Source: Anaeramoeba ignava BMAN
Taxonomy: Eukaryota > Protista > Anaeramoebae
DNA length: 64,000 nt
NCBI GenBank assembly: GCA_028826165.1
Contig: JAPDFW010000086.1
Coordinates: 62,001 to 126,000 of the forward strand
Direction: 5' to 3'
Shown in pieces: positions 17,336-37,328 of this stretch (positions within the stretch are counted from its first letter, which is position 1; each line of letters begins with the position of its first letter). The position numbers and the translations under genes were made by a program. The notes beneath the pieces are model-generated. The model was given only the letters and a program-made list of their open reading frames with translations. It did not search any database and had not been told where the DNA came from.

Positions 17336-17754
17336 ATGAATCAAACAAAAATCAAGAAAATTCATTTGAAATTTAATTAAAAAAAGGAAGAAAAGGAATA
17401 ATAAAAGATTTATCCAAATTATATGAAGAAAATGAAACAAAAGATTTTACAATAATTTTTGATAATGAAAAAGAAATTAAAGTTCATAAATTAATATTAA
17501 TAATAAGAATTGAATTATTTAAAGGAATGTTTTTAAATGTTCAAGATTCATCAAATCAAGTTCATGATTATTCAGGAAAATCATTTCAAACAATTCAAGA
17601 ATTCATTTATTTTATTTATCATGATAAATTTTCAAAAAATATCAAAAAAGAAAAAGAAATTATTTTAGAAGAATATTTTGATTTAAAAGATTATTATCAA
17701 TTAAATCAAAATTCAATAATTGATTTATTATTAAAAGAAGAAAATGAAAATTAA
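17336..17754 (+). pseudogene. Internally deleted ankyrin-BTB paralogue: start region fused to the last BTB domain
   Basis: ATG AAT CAA ACA plus short ankyrin fragments joined at AAAAAAGG to KKGRKGIIKDL...; in-frame stop at about 17376. Confidence 0.75.
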
Positions 17755-17808
17755 AATTAAATTTTCAAAAAATTCATTTTTTCATTTTCAAAATAATTAA
17801 ATAAAAAA

Positions 17809-19767
17809 ATGAAACAAACAGAACTAAATAAAGAATTAATTTCTAAATGTGAAAATGGAACATTTAAAGAAATTGAAAATTTAATTTTAAAAGGAGCTAA
17901 TGTTAATTCAATAAATTATAGAAATGAAACACCTTTACATTTAATTTGTAGATATCAACAAAATCAACAAAAAATATTTGAAATTATCAAATATCTAATT
18001 GAAAACGGAGCTGGTATTAATTCATTAAATTCAATAAATGAAACTCCTTTACATTATGCTTGCCAAAAAAATTCAATCGAAATTATTAAATATCTAATTG
18101 AAAACGGAGCTGATATTAATTCAAAAAATAATAAAAATGAAACATCTTTACATTATTCTTTCAAATATCATCAAGAAAATCTAATTGAATTAATTAAATA
18201 TTTAATTAAAAAAGGATCTGATATCAATTCAAAAAATAATAGAAATGAAACTCCTTTACACTATGCTTGTAGAAATAGAAACAAAAATACATTTGAAATT
18301 ATCAAATATTTAATTAAAAAAGGTGCTTATATCAATTCAAAAAATAATAGAAATGAAACTCCTTTATATAATGTTTGCAGATTTCAAGATCAAGAGGCAT
18401 TAGAAATTATCAAATATTTAATTTCAAAAGGTGCTGATATTAATTCAAAAAATAAAGAAAATGAAACACTTTTACATTATATTTCTAGATTACCAAGAAA
18501 TCAAAAAAATACATTTGAAATTATTAAATATTTAATTGAAAATAAAGCTGATATCAATTCCAAAAATTCATGGAATGCAACTCCTTTACATCTAATTTGT
18601 AAATTTCAAGATCATGAAAATACACTTGAAATTATCAAATATTTAATTGAAAAAGGAGCTGATATCAATTCCAAAAATTATCAAAATGAAATTCCTTTAC
18701 ATTTAATTTGTCAATATCAAGATCAAAAAAATTCATTTGAAATTGCTAAATATTTAATTAAAAAAGGTGCTAATGTTAATATAAACACAAAATATAATAA
18801 AACTCCTTTATATTTTGCAATTAAAAATCGATTAACAAAAATAATTAAATATTTATTGATGAATGATGCAAATATTCTTTATTTAAAACTAGATTCTCCA
18901 ATTACTTCAGAAATTATTGAAATATTTAATCAAATTTATTCAATTAATGATGATTTAAATAATTTATTAAAATCAAATGAAAATTTATCAGATTTTCAAA
19001 TTCAATCAAATGATTCTTTCAAATTTCAAGTTCATAAACAATTTCTTTTATTAAGATTTTATAATAATGAAACAATTTTACAAAAATTTATTGATATTTG
19101 TTCTCAAAAATCAAAAGAATATGTTCAAATTGCTTTAAATTTCCTTTATACTGGATTTACTAATTTTGATAATTATATTAAATTATTTGATACAATAATT
19201 GATTATTCTAATCAATGTAAACAAATTGGAAAAGGTTTCATTGAAGGAAGAATTACATATATTGAATTTAATCAAACAAGTGAAAAATTCAATAATTTAT
19301 TTGAAAAAGAAATTGAAACATTTCAAAAAGAAAATGAAATTATTTTAACATTATTTAAAGAAATTGGAATTGATTCAAAATGGATTGAAATAAAAAAAGG
19401 AAGAAAAGGAATAATAAAAGATTTATCCAAATTATATGAAGAAAATGAAACAAAAGATTTTAAAATAATTTTTGATAAAGAAAAAGAAATTAAAGTTCAT
19501 AAATTAATATTAATAATAAGAAGTGAATTATTTAAAGGAATGTTTTTAAATGTTCAAGATTCATCAAACCAAGTTCATGATTATTCAGGAAAATCATTTC
19601 AAACAATTCAAGAATTCATTTATTTTATTTATCATGATAAATTTTCAAAAAATATTAAAAAAGAAAAAGAAATTATTTTAGAAGAATATTTTGATTTAAA
19701 AGATTATTATCAATTAAATCAAAATTCAATAATTGATTTATTATTAAAAGAAGAAAAAGAAAATTAA
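17809..19767 (+). CDS. Ankyrin-repeat + tandem BTB/POZ protein (copy A), intronless
   Basis: About 10 ETPLH..C...IIKYLI.KGADIN repeats; BTB motifs SDFQIQ...FQVHKQFL and KDFKII...IKVHKLILIIRSELFKGMF. Confidence 0.9.
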   Translation: MKQTELNKELISKCENGTFKEIENLILKGANVNSINYRNETPLHLICRYQQNQQKIFEIIKYLIENGAGINSLNSINETPLHYACQKNSIEIIKYLIENGADINSKNNKNETSLHYSFKYHQENLIELIKYLIKKGSDINSKNNRNETPLHYACRNRNKNTFEIIKYLIKKGAYINSKNNRNETPLYNVCRFQDQEALEIIKYLISKGADINSKNKENETLLHYISRLPRNQKNTFEIIKYLIENKADINSKNSWNATPLHLICKFQDHENTLEIIKYLIEKGADINSKNYQNEIPLHLICQYQDQKNSFEIAKYLIKKGANVNINTKYNKTPLYFAIKNRLTKIIKYLLMNDANILYLKLDSPITSEIIEIFNQIYSINDDLNNLLKSNENLSDFQIQSNDSFKFQVHKQFLLLRFYNNETILQKFIDICSQKSKEYVQIALNFLYTGFTNFDNYIKLFDTIIDYSNQCKQIGKGFIEGRITYIEFNQTSEKFNNLFEKEIETFQKENEIILTLFKEIGIDSKWIEIKKGRKGIIKDLSKLYEENETKDFKIIFDKEKEIKVHKLILIIRSELFKGMFLNVQDSSNQVHDYSGKSFQTIQEFIYFIYHDKFSKNIKKEKEIILEEYFDLKDYYQLNQNSIIDLLLKEEKEN

Positions 19768-20102
19768 AAAAAGAGGAAAGGAGAAAAAATTTATTTCTTT
19801 TTTTTAATTAATTAAATAAATAAAAAAAAAGCAAAAAAAAATTTTTCATTTTAATTTTTCAATTTATTTTTTTCATTTTTTTTTTCTATTTTCTTTATTT
19901 TTATTTTGTGTTTTAATTTTAAACAACTTGAGTAAATTATTTTACACACAAAAACAAATTAAAAAACAAATCAAAATAAAAAAATTAATAAAAATAAAAA
20001 AATTAATAAAAATATAAATTAATAAAAATAACGGTTTTTTTTTTTAAATAAAAAATTTGGAAAAACAAAAACAAAAACAAACAAAACTTAAAAAGATAAA
20101 AA

Positions 20103-22006
20103 ATGAGAGAAATTGTTCATTTACAAGTTGGTCAATGTGGAAATCAAATTGGAACAAGATTTTGGGAAGATGTTTGTGGAGAACATGGTATTTCACATAG
20201 TGGAATTTATGAAGGAGATAATGAATTACAACTTGAGAGAGTAAATGTTTACTTTAATGAAGCAACTGGTGGTAATTATTTTTATTTTTCAAATCAATTT
20301 AATAAAACAAAACTCAAAAATTTGAGAAAAATTAAATTAAAATTAAAATTAAAATTAAAATTCATTTTGAAATTAAAATTAAAATTAAAATTAAAATTAA
20401 AATTAAAATTAAATTTAAAATTAAAATTAAAATTCAAAATTAAAATTAAAATTAAAATTAAAATTTAAAATTAAAAATAAAATTAAAATTAATATTGAAA
20501 TTAAAATTAAAATTCATTTTGAAATTTAAATTTAAACAGGAAAATATGTACCACGTTCAATCTTAGTTGATTTAGAAAGTGGAACAATGGATAACATTCG
20601 TTCAGGCAAATTAAAAACACTTTTCAAACCCAACAATTTTGTATATGGAACTACAGGAGCAGGAAACAATTGGGCAAAAGGACATTACACAGAAGGAGCA
20701 GAAATCAGCGAAAGCGTATTGGAAGTTTTAAGAAAAGAAGCTGAAAATTGTGAGTGCCTTCAAGGATTTCAGGTTACTCATTCTCTTGGTGGTGGAACTG
20801 GATCTGGATTGGGAACACTTCTTCTCTCTCGAATTAGAGAGGAATTTCCTGATAGAATGATTGCAACATTTTCAGTTGTGCCTTCTCCTAAAGTTTCTGA
20901 TACTGTTGTTGAACCTTATAATGCAACTCTTTCTGTTCATCAATTACTTGAAAATACTGATGAAGTTATGTGTATTGATAATGAGGCTCTTTATGAAATT
21001 TGTACAAAAACATTGAAACTTCCAAATCCTACTTATCCTGATTTAAATCATTTGGTTTCTTTTGGTATGAGTGGAATTACTTCTTGCTTAAGATTTCCAG
21101 GTAATTAATAAAAATAAAAATATTTTCAAAAACATGAAATTAAAAATAAATAAAATATTTTCAAAAACATGAAATTAAATAAAAATAAATAAAATATTTT
21201 CAAAAACATGAAATTTAATTAAAATATAAATAAAAATGAATTTAATTTAAATATTAAATAAATATTATAAATATATTTGTAAAATAGGTCAACTTAATTC
21301 TGATCTTAGAAAACTTGCAGTAAATCTTGTTCCATTCCCAAGACTTCACTTCTTCTTAATTGGAGTAGCACCACTAACAAGCATGAATTCACAAAATTAT
21401 ACAGCAGTATCAGTTGCTGAATTAGCACAACAAATGTTTTCACCTAAAAACATGATGGCAGCAGCAGACCCATCAATTGGTAAATACTTAACAGCATCTG
21501 CCATGTTCAGGGGAAGAATCCCAACAAAAGAAGTTGACGACAACATGCTTAATTTATTGAATAAATATCAAACCCAATTTATCGAATGGATTCCAAATAA
21601 TATCAAAAGCACTATTTGCGATATTCCTCCAAAAGGTCAAAAAATGAGTGTTACTTTCATTGGAAATTCAACTTCGATTCAAGAATTATTCAAAAGAGTC
21701 GGATCACAATTTAATAAAATGTTCAGAAGAAGAGCTTTTATTCATTGGTATCTTAATGAAGGAATGGATGAAATGGAATTTACTGAAGCCAAAAACAATA
21801 TGAATGATTTAGTCACTGAATATCAACAATATCAAGAAGCAAAATTGGAAGATGTGTTTGGTTATGAAGATGATGACACAATGCCAGAAACAAGAGGTGA
21901 AGATGAAGATGAAGATGATGATGATGATGCTCAAGTTTCTGTTGATTCTGGTCAAGATGATGGTGATGGTGATGGTGATGATGATGATGGTGAAGATGAT
22001 GATTAA
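20103..22006 (+). CDS. TUBB: Divergent beta-tubulin, 3 exons (20103-20271, 20540-21100, 21288-22006), 482 aa
   Basis: [76 protein letters not shown]. Confidence 0.97.
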
Positions 22007-22265
22007 ATTGTTCTTTTCAAAAAATAATAATAATAATAATATTATCAAATTTAAATTTCAAATTTCAAAATCCCAAATCGAGAAAAAATCCTTTTTTGAA
22101 GAAAACAAAAAAAGAAAAACAAATGAAAAAAAATGTTTCTTTGTTTCTTTCTTTTCTTTTCTTTTCTTTTCTTTTCTTTTCTTTTCCTTTTTTTTTGATT
22201 CATTTCATTTCAATTACAAATTTTCTTCAAAAAAAAAAATCAATTAAAAAATCAATTTTTTAAAT

Positions 22266-24872
22266 TTAAATTTTTAATTCTTTTAAAAATAAATCAATTA
22301 TTGAATTTTGATTTAATTGATAATAATCTTTTAAATCAAAATATTCTTCTAAAATAATTTCTTTTTCTTTTTTAATATTTTTTGAAAATTTATCATGATA
22401 AATAAAATAGATTAATTCTTGAATTGTTTGAAATGATTTTCCTGAATAATCATGAACTTGGTTTGATGAATCTTGAACATTTAATTGAAACATTCCTTTA
22501 AATAATTCACTTCTTATTATTAATATTAATTTATGAACTTTAATTTCTTTTTCTTTATCAAAAATTATTTTAAAATCTTTTGTTTCATTTTCTTTATATA
22601 ATTTGGATAAATCTTTTATTATTCCTTTTCTTCCTTTTTTTATTTCAATCCAATTTGAATCAATTCCAATTTCTTTAAATAATGTTAAAATAATTTCGTT
22701 TTCTTTTTGAAATAAATTATTGAATTTTTGAATTTTTTGATTAAAATAGTTTTTGTTTTTGTTTTGTTTATATTGATTAGAATAATCAAATAAATTATGA
22801 AATAATTTAACATAATTATCAAAATTAGTAAATCCAGTATAAAGGAAATTTAAAGCAATTTGAACATCTTCTTTTGATTTTTGAGAACAAATATCAATAA
22901 ATTTTTGTAAAATTGTTTCATTATTATCAAATCTTAATAAAAGAAATTGTTTATGAACTTGAAATTTGAAAGAATCATTTGATTGAATTTGAAAATTTGA
23001 TAAATTTTCATTTGATTTTAATAAATTATTTAAATCATCATTAATTGAATAAATTTGATTAAATATTTCAATAATTTCTGAAGTAATCGGAGAATCTAAT
23101 TCTAAATCAAGAATATTTGCATCATTCATTAATAAATATTTAATTAATTTTAAATTTCCTCTCTCGATTGCAAAATATAAAGGAGTTTTATTATATTTTG
23201 TGCTTATATTAACATTAGCACCTTTTTTAATTAAATATTTAGCAATTTCAAATGAATTTTTTTGATCTTGATATTTACAAATTAAATATAAAGGAGTTTC
23301 ATTTTGATTATTTTTGGAATTGATATCAGCTCCTTTTTCAATTAAATACTTGATAATTTCAAATGAATAATTTTGTTGAAATTTACAAGCTAGATGCAAA
23401 GGAGATTGACTTTCTGTGTTTCTTGAATTAACACTAGCACCTTTTTCAATTAAATATTTGATAATTTCAAATTCATAAATTTGTTGATATTGGTTTGTTA
23501 GATAATATTGAAATGAAGAATGCAAAGGAGTTTCATTCAATGAATTTTTGGAATTGATATCAGCACCTTTTTCAATTAAATATTTAACAATTTGGAATGA
23601 ATGTTCATTTTGTTGATATTGACAAATCAAATGTAAAGGAGTTTCATTTTTTTTATTTTTTGAATTAACATAAGCATCTTTTTCAATTAAATATTTGATA
23701 ATTTCAAATGATCTTTGGCTTTTGTATTTGCAAAAGGAATGTAAAAGTGTTTCGTTTTCAGTATTTTCAATATCAACATAAGTACCTTTCTCGATTGAAT
23801 ATTTGATAATATTAAACATATTTTGATTATTTTTTTGATATCGGAAAATTAAATGTAAATGTGATTGGTTTGATTTTGTTTTTGAATTAATATCAGCTCC
23901 TTTTGAAATTAAATATTTGATAATTTCTAATAATTTTTCATTTTTTTGATATTGACAAATATAATGTAAAGGAGTTTCATTTAATTTTGTTAATGAATTA
24001 ATATCTGCTTTGTTTTCAATAAAATATTTGATAATTCTCAATATATTTTCATTTTTTCCTTGAAATTTGCAAATCAAATGCAATGGAGTTTCATTTCTAT
24101 AATTTTTTGAATTAATGTCAGCTTTGTTTTCAATGAATAATTGGATAATTCTAAAGAATATTTGTTTTTTTCGATTTTTTCTAAATTGTAATCTAGAAAT
24201 ATAATGTAAAAGTGTTTCATTTTCTTTGTTTTTGGAATTAATATCAGCACCTTTTGAAATTAAATATTTGATTATTTCAAGTGTGTTTTCTTGATGAAAT
24301 CTGCAAGAATAAAATAATGGAGTTTTATTTTGGTTATTTTTTGAATTGATATCAGCTCTGTTTTTAATTAAATATTTGATAATTTCGATTGAATGTTTGT
24401 TTCTATTTCTACAACAATAATGTAATGATGTTTCATCTTTATTATTTTTTGAATTAATATCAGCACCTTTTGAAATTAAATATTTGATTATTTCAAGTGT
24501 ATTTTCTTGTTGATATTTACAAGAATAATGTAAAGGTTTTTCATTATAAATATTTTTTGAATTAATATCAGCTCCGTTTTTAATTAAACATTTAATAATT
24601 CTGATTGAATTTTTTTGACAAGCATAATGTAAAGGAGTTTCATTTATTGAATTTAATGAATTAATATCAGCTTCTTTTGAAATTAGATATTTAATAATTT
24701 CAATTGAATTTTGATGGTTTTGTTGATATCTACAAATTAAATGTAATGGTGTTTCATTTATTGAATTTATTGAATTAATATTAGCTCCTTTTAAAATTAA
24801 ATTTTCAATTTCTTTAAATGTTCCATTTTCACATTTAGAAATTAATTCTTTATTTAATTCTGTTTGTTTCAT
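22266..24872 (-). CDS. Ankyrin-repeat + tandem BTB protein (copy B), intronless
   Basis: Intact 868-aa ORF with about 16 ankyrin repeats; N-terminus almost identical to copy A. Confidence 0.9.
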   Translation of the reverse strand: MKQTELNKELISKCENGTFKEIENLILKGANINSINSINETPLHLICRYQQNHQNSIEIIKYLISKEADINSLNSINETPLHYACQKNSIRIIKCLIKNGADINSKNIYNEKPLHYSCKYQQENTLEIIKYLISKGADINSKNNKDETSLHYCCRNRNKHSIEIIKYLIKNRADINSKNNQNKTPLFYSCRFHQENTLEIIKYLISKGADINSKNKENETLLHYISRLQFRKNRKKQIFFRIIQLFIENKADINSKNYRNETPLHLICKFQGKNENILRIIKYFIENKADINSLTKLNETPLHYICQYQKNEKLLEIIKYLISKGADINSKTKSNQSHLHLIFRYQKNNQNMFNIIKYSIEKGTYVDIENTENETLLHSFCKYKSQRSFEIIKYLIEKDAYVNSKNKKNETPLHLICQYQQNEHSFQIVKYLIEKGADINSKNSLNETPLHSSFQYYLTNQYQQIYEFEIIKYLIEKGASVNSRNTESQSPLHLACKFQQNYSFEIIKYLIEKGADINSKNNQNETPLYLICKYQDQKNSFEIAKYLIKKGANVNISTKYNKTPLYFAIERGNLKLIKYLLMNDANILDLELDSPITSEIIEIFNQIYSINDDLNNLLKSNENLSNFQIQSNDSFKFQVHKQFLLLRFDNNETILQKFIDICSQKSKEDVQIALNFLYTGFTNFDNYVKLFHNLFDYSNQYKQNKNKNYFNQKIQKFNNLFQKENEIILTLFKEIGIDSNWIEIKKGRKGIIKDLSKLYKENETKDFKIIFDKEKEIKVHKLILIIRSELFKGMFQLNVQDSSNQVHDYSGKSFQTIQELIYFIYHDKFSKNIKKEKEIILEEYFDLKDYYQLNQNSIIDLFLKELKI

Positions 24873-24927
24873 TTTTTTATTTAATTATTTTTGAAAATGA
24901 AAAAATGAATTTTTTGGAAATTTAATT

Positions 24928-26959
24928 TTAATTTTCTTTTTTTTCTTTTAATAATAAATCAATTATTGAATTTTGATTTAATTGATAATAATCTTTTAAA
25001 TCAAAATATTCTTCTAAAATAATTTCTTTTTCTTTTTTAATATTTTTTGAAAATTTATCATGATAAATAAAATAAATGAATTGATGAATTGTTTGAAATG
25101 ATTTTCCTGAATAATCATGAACTTGATTTGATTTATCTTGAACATTTAAAAACATTCCTTTAAATAATTCACTTCTTATTATTAATATTAATTTATGAAC
25201 TTTAATTTCTTTTTCATTATCAAAAATTATTGTAAAGTCTTTTGTTTCATTTTCTTTATATAATTTTGATAAATCTTTTATTATTCCTTTTCTTCCTTTT
25301 TTTAATTCAATCCAATTTGAATCAATTCCAATTTCTTTAAATAATGTTAAAATAATTTCGTTTTCTTTTTGAAATATCCCAAACCCCTTTTCAATTTCTT
25401 TTTCAAATAAATTATTGATTTTATTATTTTCTTGATGATATGTGAACCATGTAACTATATCTTCTTGGAGATTATCTTCATTTTCTTGGAATTGATTGCA
25501 ATAGTCAAATAAATTATGAAAAATTTTCATAAAGTTATCAAAATCGATAAATCCAGTATAAAGGAAATTTAAAGCAATTTGAACATATTCTTTTGATTTT
25601 TGAGAACAAATATTAATAAATTTTTGTAAAATTGTTTCATTATTATCAAATCTTAATAAAAGAAATTGTTTTATGAACTTGAAATTTGAAAGAATCATTT
25701 GATTGGATTTGAAAATCTGATAAATTTTCATTTGATTTTAAAAACTTATTTAAATCATCATTAATTGAATAAATTTGATAAAATATTTCAATAATTTCTT
25801 TTTTCACTACATTCATAGGTAAATCAAAAATATTTGCACCATTCATTAACAAATATTTAATTAATTTTGTATTTCTTTTTTGTATTGCATAATGAAAAGG
25901 CGTTTCTTCGTTTTTATCTTTTGAATTAATATTAGATCCATTTTTAATGAAATATTTAGCAATTTGGAATGCTTTTTGTTTATTTTCTTGGAATTGACAA
26001 ACATAATGTAAAGGTGTTTTATTTTGGTGATTTTTTGAATTGATATCAGCTCCTTTTTCAATTAAATATTTTGTGATTTCGATTGCTATTTTTGGATTAT
26101 GGAAGTGGCAAATATAATATAAAGGAGTTTCATGATATTTATCCTTAGTGTTAACATCAGCACCTTTTTCAATTAAATATTTAATAATTTCAAGTGAATT
26201 CTTTTGAATTTGATTTTGATTTTGAATTTGATTTTGAATTTGATTTTGATTTTGATTTTGATTTTGGTTTTGATTTTGATTTTGATATTGATTTTGATTT
26301 TGGTTTTGATTTTGATTTTGATTTTGAATTTGATTTTGATTTTGATTTTTATTTTGATTTTTATTTTGATTTTGATTTTGATTTTGATTTTGATTTTGAT
26401 TTTGATTTTGATTTTGATTTTGATTTTGATTTTGATTTTGATTTTGATTTTGATTTTGATTTTGATTTTGATTTTGATTTTGATTTTGATTTTGATTTTG
26501 ATTTTGATTTTGATTTTGATTTTGATTTTGATTTTGATTTTGATTTTGATTTTGATTTTGATTTTGATTTTGATTTTGAATATAATATTTAAAAGCGAAA
26601 TTTAAAGCAGTTTCGTTAGATTTATCTTTTGAATTAATATCAGCACCTTTTTCAACTAAATATTTTGTAATTTCAAGTAAATTCTGATGTTTTTGAAATC
26701 TAAAAAGATAATGTAAAATTGATTGTTTATCAAAAATTGTTTTTGAATTAACATCAGCTCCATTTTCAATTAAATATTTTGTAATTTCAAATAAATTTTC
26801 TTCATTTTTTTTATATTTAAAAATTAAATGTAAAGGAGTTTCATTTAATGAATTTTTTGAATTAACATTAATTTCTTTTGGAATTAAATTTTGGATTTCT
26901 TTAATTGCTCCTTTTTTGCATTTTAAAATAAATTCTTGACTTATTTCTGTTTGTTTCAT
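24928..26959 (-). CDS. Ankyrin-repeat + tandem BTB protein (copy C); (QN)n insert; +1 frameshift at about 25670
   Basis: ORFs 25646-26959 and 24928-25731 join after removing one A in CATAAAACAA. Confidence 0.85.
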
Positions 26960-27056
26960 TTTTTTTATTTTTAATTCAAAATAAAAAAAAAAAAAAAAAA
27001 ATAAAAAAATAAAAATCGAAAATCATTTTTTTTATTTCATTTTTTTTTTTTAGTAA

Positions 27057-29927
<2,871 letters not shown>

Positions 29928-30008
29928 AAACATTTTTTTTATAACATTTTTTCATTTTTTTACATTTATTTTTTTTTTCATTTTTTCATTTTCAAAAATA
30001 ATTAAAAA

Positions 30009-31661
30009 ATGAATAAAAATGAAATTCAACAACTTAAATTAAATAGAAAATTAATTTTAGCTTGTCAAGAAAATTCAATTGAAAATGTTAAATTATTAAT
30101 TGAAAATGGTTCTAATATTCATTTTAAAGCTGCTAAAGGGAAAAATCCATTACATTTTGCTTGTCAAAATCAAAAACAAAATTCATTTGAAATTATTAAA
30201 TATTTAATTTCAAAAAAAGCTGATGTTAATGCCCAAACTAATAAAGGAGAAGAAACTCCTTTACATTTTGCAATTCAATTTCAAAAAAATAAAGAAAATT
30301 CATTTCAAATTATTAAATATTTAATTGAAAATGGTGCTGATGTAAATGTCAAAAATAAAAGAAAAGAAACTCCTTTACATTTTGCAATTCAATATCAAAG
30401 TCAAAATAAAGAAAATTCATTTGAAATTATTAAATATTTAATTGATAAAGGTTCAGATGTAAATGCCAAAAATATTACCAATAAAACACCTTTATATTTA
30501 TTATTCCAATATAAAAATGAAAATGCATTTGAAATTATCAAATATTGTGTTGAGAAATATCCAAATCTTAATTTTGAAAATGAAACACGAAAATTACTTG
30601 TTCCAGTTTGCAAATTTCAAAATCAAAATTCAATTAAAATTGTTAAATATTTAATTGAAAAAGGATTTGATATTAATGCTAAAATTGGTTTTTATGAAAC
30701 TCCTTTATATCTTGCTTTACAAAACAGAAATTTAAAATTAATTCAATTATTAATGATGAATGATGTAAATATTTATGATTTATCACAATTTGAAATTATA
30801 CAAGGAGTTCATGAAGTATTTCCTCAAATTTACTCAATTAATGATGATTTGAATAATTTATTAAAATCAAATGATAATTTTTCAGATTTTCAAATTCAAT
30901 CAAATGATTCTTTCAAATTTCAAGTTCATAAAACAATTTCTTTTATTAAGATTTGATAATGATGAAACAATTTTACAAAAATTTATTGATATTTGTTCTC
31001 AAAAATCAAAAGAATATGTTCAAATTGCTTTAAATTTCCTTTATACTGGATTTACTAATTTTGATGACTTAATGAACATTTTTCATATAATAACTGATCT
31101 CCAAGAAAAATTCAAAAAAAATAAACCTAATAAGAAAAATGATAAAGTTTTCTGGCATAGATATTATGTAAAATACAATGAAATAAATGATTTATTTCAA
31201 AAAGAAATTGAAAAATCCAAAAAAGAAAATGAAATTATTTTAACAATATTTAAAGAAATTGGAATTGGTTCAAAATTGGATTGAAATAAAAAAAGGAAGA
31301 AAAGGAATAATAAAAGATTTATCAAAATTATATAAAGAAAATGAAACAAAAGATTTTAAAATAATTTTTGATAATGAAAAAGAAATTAAAGTTCATAAAT
31401 TAATATTAATAATAAGAAGTGAATTATTTAAAGGAATGTTTCAATTAAATGTTGAAGATAAATCAAATCAAGTTCATGATTATTCAGGAAAATCATTTCA
31501 AACAATTTATCAATTAATCCATTTTATTTATCATGATAAATTTTCAAAAAATATTAAAAAAGAAAAAGAAATTATTTTAGAAGAATATTTTGATTTAAAA
31601 GATTATTATCAATTAAATCAAAATTCAATAATTGATTTATTTTTAAAAGAAAGAAAATTAA
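30009..31661 (+). CDS. Ankyrin-repeat + tandem BTB protein (copy D); frameshifts at about 30930, 31272 and 31652
   Basis: ORFs 30009-30956, 30871-31284 and 31259-31717 are colinear with the paralogues; the stop homologous to other copies is at 31659-31661. Confidence 0.82.
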
Positions 31662-31709
31662 AATTAAATTTCCAAAAAATCATTTTTTCATTTTCAAAAA
31701 TAATTAAAA

Positions 31710-33354
31710 ATGAATAAAAATGAAATTCAACAAATTAAATTAAATAGAAAATTAATTTTAGCTTGTAAAAGAAATTCAATTGAAAATGTTAAATTATTAA
31801 TTGAAAATGGTTCTAATATTCATTTTAAAGCTGCTAAAGGGAAAAATCCATTACATTTTGCTTGTCAAAATCAAAAATCAAAATTCATTTGAAATTATTA
31901 AATATTTAATTTCAAAAAAAGCTGATGTTAATGCCCAAACAAATAAAGGAGAAGAAACTCCTTTACATTTTGCAATTCAATTTCAAAAAAATAAAGAAAA
32001 TTCATTTGAAATTATTAAATATTTAATTGAAAATGGTGCTGATGTAAATGTCAAAAATAAAAGAAAAGAAATTCCTTTACATTTTGCAATTCAATATCAA
32101 AGTCAAAATAAAGAAAATTCATTTGAAATTATTAAATATTTACTTGATAAAGGTTCAGATGTAAATGCCAAAAATATTACCAATAAAACACCTTTATATT
32201 TATTATTCCAATATAAAAATGAAAATGCATTTGAAATTATCAAATATTGTGTTGAGAAATATCCAAATCTTAATTTTGAAAATGAAACACGAAAATTACT
32301 TGTTCCAGTTTGCAAATTTCAAACTCAATTCAACTCAATTAAAATTGCTAAATATTTAATTGAAAAAGGATTTGATATTAATGCTAAAATTGGTTTTTAT
32401 GAAACTCCTTTATATCTTGCTTTACAAAACAGAAATTTAAAATTAATTCAATTATTAATGATGAATGATGTAAATATTTATGATTTATCGCCATTCAAAA
32501 TTACACAAGGAATTATTAAAAAATTTCCTAAAATTTACTCAATTAATGAAGATTTGAATAATTTATTAAAATCAAATGATAATTTTTCAGATTTTCAAAT
32601 TCAATCAAATGATTCTTTCAAATTTCAAGTTCATAAACAATTCCTTTTATTAAGATTTGATAATAATGAAACAATTTTACAAAAATTTATTGATATTTGT
32701 TCTCAAAAATCAAAAGAATATGTTCAAATTGCTTTAAATTTCCTTTATACTGGATTTACTGATTTTGATTATTTTATGAAAAAGTTTCATAATTTTGCTA
32801 ATTATCGAAAGCAACTGATTACCAATCAAAAAAATCTAGATTTAAATAAAATTTTATGGCCTGAATATCATCAAAAAAGTGAAGAAATCAAAAAGTTATT
32901 TACAAAAAATGATGAAAAATTCAAAGAAGAAAATGAAATGATTTTAACATTTTTCAAAGAAATTGGAATTGATTCAAATTGGATTGAAATAAAAAAAGGA
33001 AGAAAAGGAATAATAAAAGATTTATCAAAATTATATGAAGAAAATGAAACAAAAGACTTTACAATAATTTGTTCAAGAAAAAGAATTAAAGTTCATAAAT
33101 TAATATTAATAATAAGAAGTGAATTATTTAAAGGAATGTTTTTATTAAATGTTGAAGATAAATCAAATCAAGTTCATGATTATTCAGGAAAATCATTTGA
33201 AACAATTTATCAATTAATCCATTTTATTTATCATGATAAATTTGATAAATCAAAAAAAATAAGACAAGAAACAAAGAAAGAATATCTTGATTTAAAAGAT
33301 TATTATCAATTAAATCAAAATTCAATAATTAATTTAATTTTAAATAAAAATTAG
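31710..33354 (+). CDS. Ankyrin-repeat + tandem BTB protein (copy E); +1 frameshift at about 31880
   Basis: Ankyrin half almost identical to copy D; BTB motifs as in the other copies. Confidence 0.85.
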
Positions 33355-33410
33355 AGAGAAAAATTTCATTTTTTTCATTTTTTTCATTTTTCATTTTTCA
33401 TTTCAATAAA

Positions 33411-35582
33411 ATGAGTGAAAAAGATATAAATCAAGAATTCATTTCGAAATGTGAAAATGGAACAATTGAAGAAATTCAAAATTTAATTAATTTAAATGGA
33501 TCTAATATCAATTTAAAATCATTAACAACCCAAAGATCAATACATTTAATTTGTCAATTTCAAAATCAAGAAAATTCACTTGAAATTATTAAATATTTAG
33601 TTGAAAATGGGATTAATGCAAATTCAAAAAACAATAAAAGAGAAGCACCTTTACATTTAATTTGTCAATATCAAACCAAAAACGAATATTCAATTGAAAT
33701 CATGAAATATTTACTTTCAAAAGGAGCTGATATCAATTCAAAATGTTTTGGAAATCAAACACCTTTACATTATGCTTGTCAATATAATTCATTTGAAGTT
33801 ATCAAATATTTAATTGAAAATCAAGCTGATATTAATTAAAAACAGAAATAATGAAACTCCTTTGAATTTAATTCTAAAAACAAAAAAGATGAAACTGTTT
33901 TGCATTTGATTTGTCAGTATCATTTCCAAAATGAACAAGAGAAAGAGAAAGAAAAATCATTTGAAATTTTCAAATATTTGATTGAAAAAGAAGCTGATAT
34001 TAATGCAAAAAACAAAGAAAATGAAACTCCTTTACATTTGATTTGCGAATATCAACAAAAAAAAGAAAATCTTTTTGAAGTTATCAAATATTTAATTGAA
34101 AAAGAAGCTGATATTAATGCAAAAAACAAAGAAAATGAAACTCCTTTACATTTGATTTGCGAATTTCAAAACAAAGAAAATGCACTTGAAGTTATTAAAT
34201 ATTTAATTGGTAAAGGAGCTGATGTAAATGCAAAAAATGATAAAAATGAAACTCCTTTGCATTATGCCTTGAAATATTACTTCCAGTATCTATACTTAAA
34301 AGAAAATGCATTTGAAGTAATCAAATATTTAATTTTAAGAGGAGCTGATATTAATATTCCAAATAAAACTAATGAAACTCCTTTGCATTTAGTTTGCAAA
34401 TCTCAACAAAATCAACAAAATTCTCTTGAAATGGCAAAGTATTTAATTAAAATGGGTTCAAATGTTAATGCAAAAGCAGATCGAAATGAAACTCCCTTAC
34501 ATTATGTTTGTGAATTCCAAAAAAGTCAAGAAAATTCAATTAAAATTGCTAAAGCTTTAATTAAAAATGGTGCTAATGTTGATGCAGCAGCTAAAGGAAA
34601 TCGAATTGCTTTGTATTTTGCAATTCAAAAAGGGAATTTAAAATTAGTTGAATTATTATTGATGAATGATGCTGATCTTGTTGATTTAGCAACTGCTCCT
34701 AAGCTTACTCCAGAAATTAATGAAAATTCTTCTCAAATTTATTCAATTAATGAAGATTTGAATAATTTATTAAAATCAAATGAAAATTTTTCAGATTTTC
34801 AAATCCAATCAAATGATTCTTTCAAATTTCAAGTTCATAAAAAATTTCTTTTATTAAGATTTGATAATGATGAAAAAATTTTACAAAAATTTATTGATAT
34901 TTGTTCTCAAAAATCAAAAGAAGATGTTCAAATTGCTTTAAATTTCCTTTATACTGGATTTACTGATTTTGATTATTTTATTGAATCTTTCAATAATTTT
35001 ATTCGTTATTATAATGAACATCAAAAGATTACAAAAGCTGTTATTGAAAAAAAAATTAGTTATCCTCAACACAATCGAAGAGTTGTGATAAATAGTGAGT
35101 TATTCCAAAAAGAAAAATCCAAAAAAATTGAAAAATCCAAAAAAGAAAATGAAATGATTTTAACATTATTCAAAGAAATTGGAATTGATTCAAATTGGAT
35201 TGAAATAAAAAAAGGAAGAAAAGGAATAATAAAAGATTTATCCAAATTATATGAAGAAAATGAAACAAAAGATTTTAAAATAATTTTTGATAATGAAAAA
35301 GAAATTAAAGTTCATAAATTAATATTAATAATAAGAAGTGAATTATTTAAAGGAATGTTTTTAAATGTTCAAGATAAATCAAATCAAGTTCATGATTATT
35401 CAGGAAAATCATTTGAAACAATTCAAGAATTCATTTATTTTATTTATCATGATAAATTTTCAAAAAATATTAAAAAAGAAAAAGAAATTATTTTAGAAGA
35501 ATATTTTGATTTAAAAGATTATTATCAATTAAATCAAAATTCAATAATTGATTTATTTTTAAAAGAAGAAAAAGAAAATTAA
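33411..35582 (+). CDS. Ankyrin-repeat + tandem BTB protein (copy F); interrupted by a stop and a collapsed repeat at 33837-33900
   Basis: ORFs 33411-33839 and 33900-35582; the junction contains two partial ankyrin starts. Confidence 0.8.
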
Positions 35583-35637
35583 AATTAAATTTCTATTCAA
35601 AAAATTCATTTTTTCATTTTCAAAAATAAATAAAAAA

Positions 35638-37328
35638 ATGAAACAAAATCAAAATTATCAAATTAAATTAAATAGAAAATTATTTTCAGCTTGTCAAGAG
35701 AATTCAATTGAAAATGTTAAATTAGCAATTGAAAACGGTTCTGATGTTAATTTTAAAAGTGATAAAGGAAAATCTCCTTTACATTTTGCTTGTCAAAATC
35801 AAAAATCAAATTCATTTGAAATTATTAAATATTTAATTTCAAAAAAAGCGTCTATCAATGTCAAAACAAAGAAAGGACAAGAAACTCCTTTACATTTAGC
35901 TTGTCAATTTCAAAAAAACAAAAACTCAATTGAAATTATTAAGTATTTAATTGAAAATGGTGCTGATGTAAATGTCAGAAATAAAGAAAATGATTCTCCT
36001 TTACATTTAGCTTGTCAATTTCAAAAAAATCAAAAAGCATTTGAAATGATCAAATATTTAATTGAAAACAAAGCATATGTAAATGCCAGAAATGCTAATA
36101 ATAAGACTCCTTTGCATTTAGTTTGTCAATTTCAAAATCAACCAAACTCAATTGAAATTGTCAAATATTTAATTGAAAAAGAAGCTGATGTTAATGTCAA
36201 GTCACATCCTTTAATTCAAACTCCTTTACATTATGTTTTTCAATATCAAAAAATCAAGAAAATGAATTTAAAATTGCTAAAGCTTTAATTAAAAATGGAG
36301 TTGATATTAATGTTAAGAATAATAGAAAGGAAACTGTTTTATATCTTGCAATTCAAAAAGGGAATTTAAAATTAATTAAATATTTATTGATGAATGATGC
36401 AAATATTTTTGATTTAAAACTAGATTCTAAAGTTACTTCAGAAATTATTGAAATATTTAATCAAATTTATTCAATTAATGATGATTTAAATAATTTATTA
36501 AAATCAAATGAAAATTTATCAGATTTTCAAATTCAATCAAATGATTCTTTCAAATTTCAAGTTCATAAAAAATTTCTTTTATTAAGATTTGATAATGATG
36601 AAACAATTTTACAAAAATTTATTGATATTTGTTCTCAAAAATCAAAAGAAGATGTTCAAATTGCTTTAAATTTCCTTTATACTGGATTTATTAATTTTGA
36701 TAATTATGTTAAAATTTTTCATACAATAATTGGTTACCAAGAAAGAAACAAAAAAATCGAAGAAGAATATAATAAATATCAAAGTCCATTTTATCGATCT
36801 TATCAAAATCGTCTCGAAATTACTATTTTATTCCAAAAAGAAATTGAAAAATCCAAAAAAGAAAATGAAATGATTTTAACAATATTTAAAGAAATTGGAA
36901 TTGATTCAAAATGGATTGAAATAAAAAAAGGAAGAAAAGGAATAATAAAAGATTTATCCAAATTATATGAAGAAAATGAAACAAAAGATTTTAAAATAAT
37001 TTTTGATAATGAAAAAGAAATTAAAGTTCATAAATTAATATTAATAATAAGAAGTGAATTATTTAAAGGAATGTTTTTAAATGTTCAAGATTCATCAAAT
37101 CAAGTTCATGACTATTCAGGAAAATCATTTCAAACAATTTATCAATTACTCCATTTTATTTATCATGATGAATTTGATAAAAGAAGGAAAATAACTCAAA
37201 AAATTAAAGATGAATTTTCTGATTTAAAAGATTATTATCAATTAAATCAAAATTCAATAATTGATTTATTATTAAAAGAAGAATATAAAAAGAAGAAAAG
37301 AAAAAGAAAAAACAACAAAAAAAATTAA
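35638..37328 (+). CDS. Ankyrin-repeat + tandem BTB protein (copy G); -1 frameshift in the A-run at about 36250
   Basis: ORFs 35638-36288 and 36387-37328 join through KIAKALIKNGVDIN...; basic C-terminal tail KKKKRKRK. Confidence 0.85.

Follow-up and report, generated by a model that had tools for sequence, protein, structure and literature searches.

A tandem array of ankyrin-BTB-BTB genes

We analysed a window of 64,000 nt from the genome of Anaeramoeba ignava BMAN (G+C about 19%; assembly total 42.8 Mb), within which a tandem array of genes encodes ankyrin repeats followed by two BTB domains. The genome has an A+T content of 80.65% and was assembled from Nanopore plus Illumina reads, and neither BTB nor ankyrin is mentioned in the main text of the paper that describes it (PMC11550330). 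Positions 17371-37328 of the window hold seven Ank-BTB-BTB paralogues (A to G) and a 3' remnant (R), confirming the count that a first-pass annotation had given for this 20 kb. Each paralogue consists of an ankyrin array, a first BTB block (BTB1), a variable cassette, a second BTB block (BTB2) and a tail; the cassette encodes the linker between the two BTBs, which is predicted to fold as a helical hairpin. We recomputed the cassette borders from anchor motifs, and they agree with the positions first noted to within about 25 nt. The genes and their parts are as follows.

17371-17756, plus strand: remnant R, only the 3' part of BTB2 and the tail, the upstream copy being lost; directly following the PP4R3 gene
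17809-19767, plus strand: gene A, an intact open reading frame (ORF) of 652 amino acids (aa), encoding about 9 ankyrin repeats ahead of BTB1, the hairpin and BTB2
18937-19159, plus strand: BTB1 block of A, a degenerate BTB without the third strand
19160-19329, plus strand: cassette of A, a helical hairpin (helices 86-111 and 117-151 in the model)
19330-19767, plus strand: BTB2 block and tail of A, a canonical BTB (PF00651, 45.5 bits)
22266-24872, minus strand: gene B, an intact ORF of 868 aa with about 15 ankyrin repeats; cassette 22704-22829, shortened to 42 codons
24928-26959, minus strand: gene C, with an extra A in BTB1 and an ankyrin loop enlarged by a long poly-NQ insert; cassette 25366-25548
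30009-31717, plus strand: gene D, with two 1-nt frame breaks (BTB1 and BTB2); cassette 31054-31224
about 31720-33354, plus strand: gene E, with a frame break in its N-terminal part and the first strand of BTB2 scrambled (IICSRKRIKV); cassette 32758-32928
33411-35582, plus strand: gene F, with in-frame stops at about 33838-33855 within a partial ankyrin repeat; cassette 34962-35144
35583-35637, plus strand: an example of an intergenic spacer (F to G), about 55 nt
35638-37328, plus strand: gene G, with a frame break at an A6 run near 36250; cassette 36690-36860

The ankyrin profiles PF00023 and PF12796 match at E 1e-45 to 1e-95, and Pfam reports ankyrin repeats plus a single BTB, which is BTB2. 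The number of ankyrin motifs varies from about 6 to 15 across the copies, close to the range of about 6 to 16 proposed earlier, and the cassette of B is indeed shortened. Compared with the BTB2 ends of A, B, C, F and G, remnant R shows 91-98% identity.

The description of the genes as intronless applies to A and B only, which have uninterrupted ORFs. The other five of the seven copies carry frame breaks (one in C, two in D), which may be real decay or homopolymer errors. Public gene models span these breaks with introns; the model for F puts an intron over the in-frame stops, and the model for D (P0010) places introns over both breaks, so that part of BTB1 is translated in the wrong frame and half of the hairpin is missed. 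Public models of the Ank/double-BTB family are therefore to be used with care. As a partial control from elsewhere in the family, 315 residues of the transcript-derived protein P0041, hairpin included, are 100% identical to their genomic locus.

Near-identical blocks enclose a divergent segment

We aligned the C-terminal modules at the DNA level and found two near-identical blocks with a divergent segment between them and sharp borders. Pairwise DNA identities and the lengths of maximum likelihood (ML) trees differ among the segments as follows.

BTB1 block: pairwise DNA identity 95-99%; ML tree length 0.10 substitutions/site
Cassette: pairwise DNA identity 53-81%; ML tree length 3.06 substitutions/site
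BTB2 block: pairwise DNA identity 91-98%; ML tree length 0.19 substitutions/site
Ankyrin cap: pairwise DNA identity 65-92%; ML tree length 1.39 substitutions/site
Tail: a short patch with three alleles (A, B, C, D and F identical; E and G each different); ML tree length 0.44 substitutions/site

The constant-variable-constant arrangement that had been noticed by eye is thus borne out by measurement, with 91-99% identity in the flanking blocks against 53-81% in the cassette. The same is true of the observation that D and E share an ankyrin half and differ in their cassettes. These two copies are 98-100% identical over about 1 kb of ankyrin and BTB1 sequence, their cassettes are 42-70% identical (40-nt windows), and three further short patches are equally low.

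We placed these modules within a family analysis that drew 62 modules from about 30 contigs, on which they form roughly twenty genomic clusters; more than 117 modules of the family are recovered at E<=1e-60. With 57 codons each, the cassettes of A, D, E and G align without gaps to the long-form linkers of other clusters and have a common hydrophobic skeleton, xDFDxF..F..h..Y ... I.W. For these four copies, the cassette cores are consequently not the barely alignable sequences that they had been taken for.

Evidence for recombination in the flanks

Because protein constraint and A+T-biased codons could mimic identity at the DNA level, we examined silent and non-coding sites. The proportion of differing silent sites (pS) in the flanks is 0.02-0.05 within the window's cluster, compared with a median of 0.23 over all module pairs, most of which are between clusters. 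Where two copies have the same residue, the codons mismatch at 3.0% of positions in the flanks, at 10.8% in the hairpin and at 10.1% in flanks compared between clusters (Fisher p 0.0096, three independent pairs). Using the fitted ratios of replacement to silent rates (omega, below), the silent divergence (dS) implied for the hairpin is 3.4-13 times the value for the flanks in every one of the 21 pairs.

The identity extends into non-coding DNA. The spacers of about 55 nt are near-identical at four junctions, namely R to A (17757-17808), C to B (24873-24927), D to E, and F to G, while the flanks at the edges of the array show no relation to them. Blast tracts of 95-96% identity start in the BTB2 tail, cross the spacer and continue into the following gene; self-blast was done gene by gene, a whole-region search being swamped by simple repeats. 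The identity of the spacers indicates that the likeness of the flanks is not due to coding constraint. Taken together, the silent-site, dS and spacer evidence shows that the flanks share a much younger ancestry than the hairpins and the ankyrin arrays.

A conserved TTCATTTTTTCATTTTC element also recurs in the spacers, immediately 5' of every start codon. This TTCATTTTTTCATTTTC element may be a core promoter whose copies travel with the BTB2 tail.

We built a tree from the BTB blocks of 61 family modules. Each genomic cluster forms a tight clade of its own in this tree, and the cluster in the window has 99% support with internal branches of 0.01-0.04. Trees of individual segments conflict with each other: the ankyrin cap groups D with E at 100% support, and the tail groups E with G at 99%. 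The check for incongruence suggested by the first-pass annotation therefore returned a positive answer. Within the flanks alone, 438 of 780 pairs of informative sites are incompatible, and the pairwise homoplasy index (PHI) test rejects a single history (p=0.0005). C and D, which lie on opposite strands, carry an identical 1-nt insertion in BTB1. Moreover, R together with the start of A matches the end of C together with the start of B, and the duplication units are therefore offset from the gene borders.

This pattern is the signature of gene conversion and unequal crossing-over. The conserved blocks have thus acted as recombination arms, as had been proposed, on an evolutionary timescale. 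The data also support germline recombination at these blocks that re-pairs ankyrin arrays with hairpins. Of the proposed shuffling of modules, this germline re-pairing stands, and the idea of a shared pool of cassettes does not, there being no donors for D and E.

Search for a programmed diversification system

We searched the whole genome with two of the cassettes, those of D and E, and found best matches of 70-74% identity that lie inside the cluster, with no donor outside it. A shared cassette pool was rejected on this result, as neither cassette has a donor above 74% identity. Signal repeats were sought around two cassettes, yielding weak AT-rich matches only, and no reverse transcriptase, template repeat or signal repeat was found nearby. 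Overall, there is no excess of replacement changes, no donor pool for the D and E cassettes, no set of signals around the two cassettes inspected, and a variable segment that is dispensable in paralogues (below). A programmed or selected diversifying system is not shown by these data. The first-pass annotation had named neutral linker drift combined with congruent trees as the outcome that would speak against such a system; we observed drift of the neutral kind, together with trees that are incongruent.

The hairpin is weakly constrained and dispensable in paralogues

We estimated omega by codon-frequency-aware ML in 12 phylogenetically independent close pairs. The BTB blocks have an omega of 0.23 (twice the log-likelihood difference, 2dlnL, is 50 against omega = 1), and the linker has an omega of 0.91, which does not differ from 1 (2dlnL 0.08). 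When the hydrophobic and the exposed columns of the linker were analysed apart, neither gave a sign of positive selection, the exposed columns having an omega of 0.72. Ratios of replacement to silent divergence (dN/dS) calculated by the Nei-Gojobori method were dropped, since the 80% A+T codon bias brings them near 1 even for the clearly constrained BTB blocks.

The hairpin is dispensable in paralogues. Across the 62 modules from other clusters the linker varies between 8 and 71 residues. About half of these modules have a long form of about 57 residues with the common hydrophobic skeleton; the others have linkers of 16-19 residues, or runs of (NE)n, (NS)n or K/E-rich sequence instead. The double-BTB fold is predicted to be unchanged by a shortened linker, with a predicted local distance difference test (pLDDT) score of 83.2 compared to 86.8. 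In the alignment made here, the hairpin is absent from the double-BTB tails of Anaeramoeba RCC1, WD40 and Sel1 proteins, and it is present in P0041, a deep-branching ankyrin member. Its omega of 0.91, the lack of positive selection and its shortening, replacement or absence in relatives do not bear out the suggestion that the cassette is a diversified element for recognition or dimerisation specificity.

A predicted BTB pseudo-dimer

We modelled the tail of A (residues 368-652, 285 residues) with AlphaFold, using an input alignment of 53 family members, and obtained a pLDDT of 86.8 and a predicted template modelling (TM) score of 0.86. In agreement with the earlier guess of a helical hairpin, the cassette is modelled as two long antiparallel helices (residues 86-111 and 117-151; pLDDT 85-95) that protrude from the module and connect BTB1, truncated to two strands and three helices, with a complete BTB2.

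BTB2 is readily recognised, scoring 45-58 bits against PF00651 in A, B, F and G (cut-off 20.5) and matching many BTB domains by shape (VIA Z 11-12; root-mean-square deviation 2.5-3.5). BTB1 has no Pfam match. Its family profile matches the BTB of CP190 (E 3.6e-4, positions 14-123), its third strand is missing in the model, and the whole module aligns to a two-BTB chain. The best whole-module match of the A tail is 4u2m_A (Foldseek E 1.6e-5; VIA Z 12.8 over 205 residues), and a family member of 227 residues with a 16-residue linker (pLDDT 83.2) also has 4u2m as its best match (Z 12.0 over 187 residues). The best shapes in the ESM Atlas are RCC1-BTB and LZTR1-type tandem-BTB proteins (TM 0.61-0.68 over 218-230 residues).

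Because the model agrees with its best matches, which are single-chain BTB heterodimers, we infer that the tail would be an intramolecular BTB pseudo-dimer, with the degenerate BTB1 packed on the canonical BTB2 and the hairpin as the tether. A literature search for natural tandem-BTB pseudo-dimers turned up RhoBTB papers only.

Likely function and comparison with known systems

At E<=1e-5, protein relatives were found only in Anaeramoeba (A. ignava and A. flamelloides). BTB2 resembles the BTBs of the Cul3 adaptors KBTBD4, KBTBD2 and SPOP. A HMMER alignment to KBTBD4 puts V-Q-D of the family opposite L-K-E, the phi-x-E contact motif in the alpha3-beta4 loop, so that Asp stands for Glu; V215 does not vary, conservation of D217 is 90% or higher, and BTB1 is without the contact loop. 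The cullin profile PF00888 scores above its cut-off at 8 or more genomic loci. Judged from these sequence features, binding to a Cullin appears plausible, and this large, Anaeramoeba-restricted family is probably one of Cullin-RING substrate adaptors in which the ankyrin array is likely the substrate-binding part.

In A. flamelloides, four proteins (P0061, P0068, P0070 and P0071) have related BTB tails behind leucine-rich repeat (LRR; NLR-like) and Rab/Ras GTPase domains, with matches that cover only 35-44% of the query, so that a double-BTB tail is merely putative in them. If these are the same tail, it would be a general-purpose module in the genus Anaeramoeba.

The module may be compared with several known architectures. 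LZTR1 (Kelch repeats plus BTB-BACK-BTB-BACK) and RCC1-BTB proteins of the RCBTB/claret type likewise carry two BTB-fold units on a single chain, after a domain of binding repeats. Of the 285 residues, 218-230 align to them in the ESM Atlas shape search (TM by query 0.61-0.68), and the helical element between the BTBs here takes the place of their BACK/3-box. Unlike in these proteins, BTB1 is truncated, having neither the third strand nor the Cul3-contact loop, and what lies between the BTBs amounts to a hairpin of just two helices, variable and in many cases deleted. The sequence relationship is limited to the BTB fold, and the proteins are likened by shape, not by orthology.

The engineered single chains Miz1-BCL6 and Miz1-NAC1 (4u2m and 4u2n) contain two tethered BTBs packed as a dimer, as modelled here. 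Those proteins were made artificially by fusing two complete BTB-ZF domains through a designed linker, whereas the module described here is natural, has one degenerate half and would be tethered by a helical hairpin.

ABTB1/BPOZ and IBTK have ankyrin repeats plus two BTBs and assemble Cullin-3 ligases. Both share with the present genes the order of a binding or regulatory domain followed by tandem BTBs, as does RhoBTB; none of the three was retrieved by the sequence searches, and animals have one to three such genes, compared with hundreds here. RhoBTB, a GTPase plus two BTBs, takes part in Cullin-3 ligase assembly according to two papers (PMC4931677, PMC3946479).

The hallmarks of concerted evolution in tandem families are clades that follow location, mosaic sites, low silent divergence and homogenised non-coding DNA, and all of these are found here. 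Divergent segments that escape homogenisation are known from such families as well; the escaping segment at this locus is a neutrally evolving tether between domains and not a demonstrably selected binding region.

Explanations for the mosaic pattern

We consider that the pattern has probably arisen by concerted evolution of the BTB blocks through gene conversion around a neutrally drifting helical tether, in a partly decayed tandem cluster. The BTB-coding blocks are under purifying selection, and according to this explanation they are also repeatedly homogenised, together with the short spacer, by short-tract gene conversion or unequal crossing-over. The hairpin is little constrained and changes at a near-neutral rate with frequent insertions and deletions. 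Once diverged, it would no longer pair in a heteroduplex, and we infer that conversion tracts would for this reason end at its edges. Little constraint and the stopping of tracts would together leave an old, copy-specific hairpin between young, near-identical flanks, and the same recombination re-associates ankyrin arrays, hairpins and tail patches among the copies by germline shuffling. The mosaic, the rate contrast, the recombination signal and the dispensability of the hairpin in paralogues are shown by the data, and the tract-stopping mechanism would connect them.

Several points weigh against this explanation. Among the independent close pairs from other clusters, about half have a ratio of linker to flank rates of 0.6-4, where about 2.9 is expected from the omegas; the other close pairs, A-B included (17-fold), lie well above the expectation. 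Since about half of the pairs from other clusters fit neutral drift at the same age, the strong mosaic is specific to certain clusters. Double-strand-gap repair could in principle copy across a hairpin of about 170 nt with homology on both sides, and the persistence of the hairpin in 7 of 7 copies could reflect selection against homogenisation. An omega near 1 could mask a mixture of constrained and positively selected sites, and the long-form hairpins retain a conserved hydrophobic skeleton. Lastly, the frame breaks and the flank identity are known from the assembled sequence alone, and the pseudo-dimer packing is a prediction of AlphaFold models.

The best-surviving alternative, which we nonetheless consider unlikely, is that the hairpin is a selected specificity element, either a second binding surface or a pairing code, that is kept distinct against gene conversion. 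It accounts for a hairpin that is unique in every copy (those of D and E, which were searched, having no donor elsewhere), that survives between converted flanks in all seven, that is confidently predicted as a protruding two-helix element (pLDDT 85-95), and whose long forms hold the hydrophobic skeleton while other positions vary. The measured omega of 0.91, not above 1, with 0.72 at exposed positions, argues against it, as do silent sites that have diverged as much as replacement sites. Furthermore, the hairpin is deleted or of low complexity in many paralogues, with the predicted fold unchanged, is missing from the aligned RCC1, WD40 and Sel1 tails, and occurs here in a cluster in which 5 of 7 copies look broken.

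A more specific version of this idea is that the hairpin is a copy-specific code on a constant, self-capped double-BTB module, kept different by selection against gene conversion, that chooses a partner (an adaptor, a cullin isoform or a second substrate site). We regard it as speculative and doubtful. If it were true, it could let hundreds of near-identical adaptors function next to one another and yet avoid cross-talk.

Much the same mosaic might be expected if the genes were recent tandem duplicates whose hairpins and parts of whose ankyrin arrays had diverged fast because mutation was locally more frequent or repair error-prone. Outside the short patches, D and E are 98-100% identical, and hairpin divergence affects silent and replacement sites alike, as such a process would predict. 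We found none of the nearby elements (reverse transcriptase, template or signal repeat) listed above, however, and the sharp patch borders and the discrete shared alleles of the tail fit transfer between copies instead. The incompatibility of sites in the flanks itself requires recombination, and the hairpins retain the family-wide skeleton, like old homologues. This alternative is therefore very improbable.

We give least credence of all to the flank identity being an artefact in which short-read polishing of the Nanopore assembly cross-corrected the paralogues and made some of the frame breaks: the assembly does combine Nanopore and Illumina reads (PMC11550330) and several breaks do fall in A-runs of multi-copy blocks, but polishing cannot lift roughly 65-75% identity (the level of the cassette and ankyrin cap) to 97%, the flanks hold phylogenetically structured differences with a flank sequence of its own for each cluster, the same pattern reaches into unique spacers, and a transcript-derived protein equals another family member at 100% across both BTBs and the hairpin.

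Other features of the locus

The array is interrupted by unrelated genes and sequence, comprising a beta-tubulin gene, a long low-complexity repeat and a fragment of a small-GTPase gene. The beta-tubulin gene (20103-22006, between A and B) is divergent, has at least 3 exons and encodes an unusually long acidic C-terminal tail. The repeat (27229-28700) is a tandem array of about 1.4 kb in which short degenerate units repeat, with a self-identity of about 90% at many offsets; it yields a spurious ORF of 452 aa and stands between the inverted B-C pair and genes D to G. Directly upstream of D (29532-29927) is an ORF for the C-terminal half of a Rab-like small GTPase, ending in CC. Within gene C itself (26190-26600, minus strand), an (NQ)n tract of about 130 residues lies inside an ankyrin repeat, encoded in one unbroken frame of hexanucleotide repeats.

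Implications

The large Anaeramoeba BTB families (ankyrin, RCC1, WD40 and Sel1, with LRR and Rab tentatively included) have a common tail, which is predicted to be a single-chain pseudo-dimer that contains one complete BTB. If this is true, each adaptor would be monomeric and would not cross-dimerise with its paralogues, which could be what permits the expansion of these families. The constant-hypervariable-constant pattern is real, but the array is most likely not a recognition system. The window shows how such a pattern can arise without diversifying selection, and caution is called for when reading the receptor-like repertoires of the A. ignava genome.

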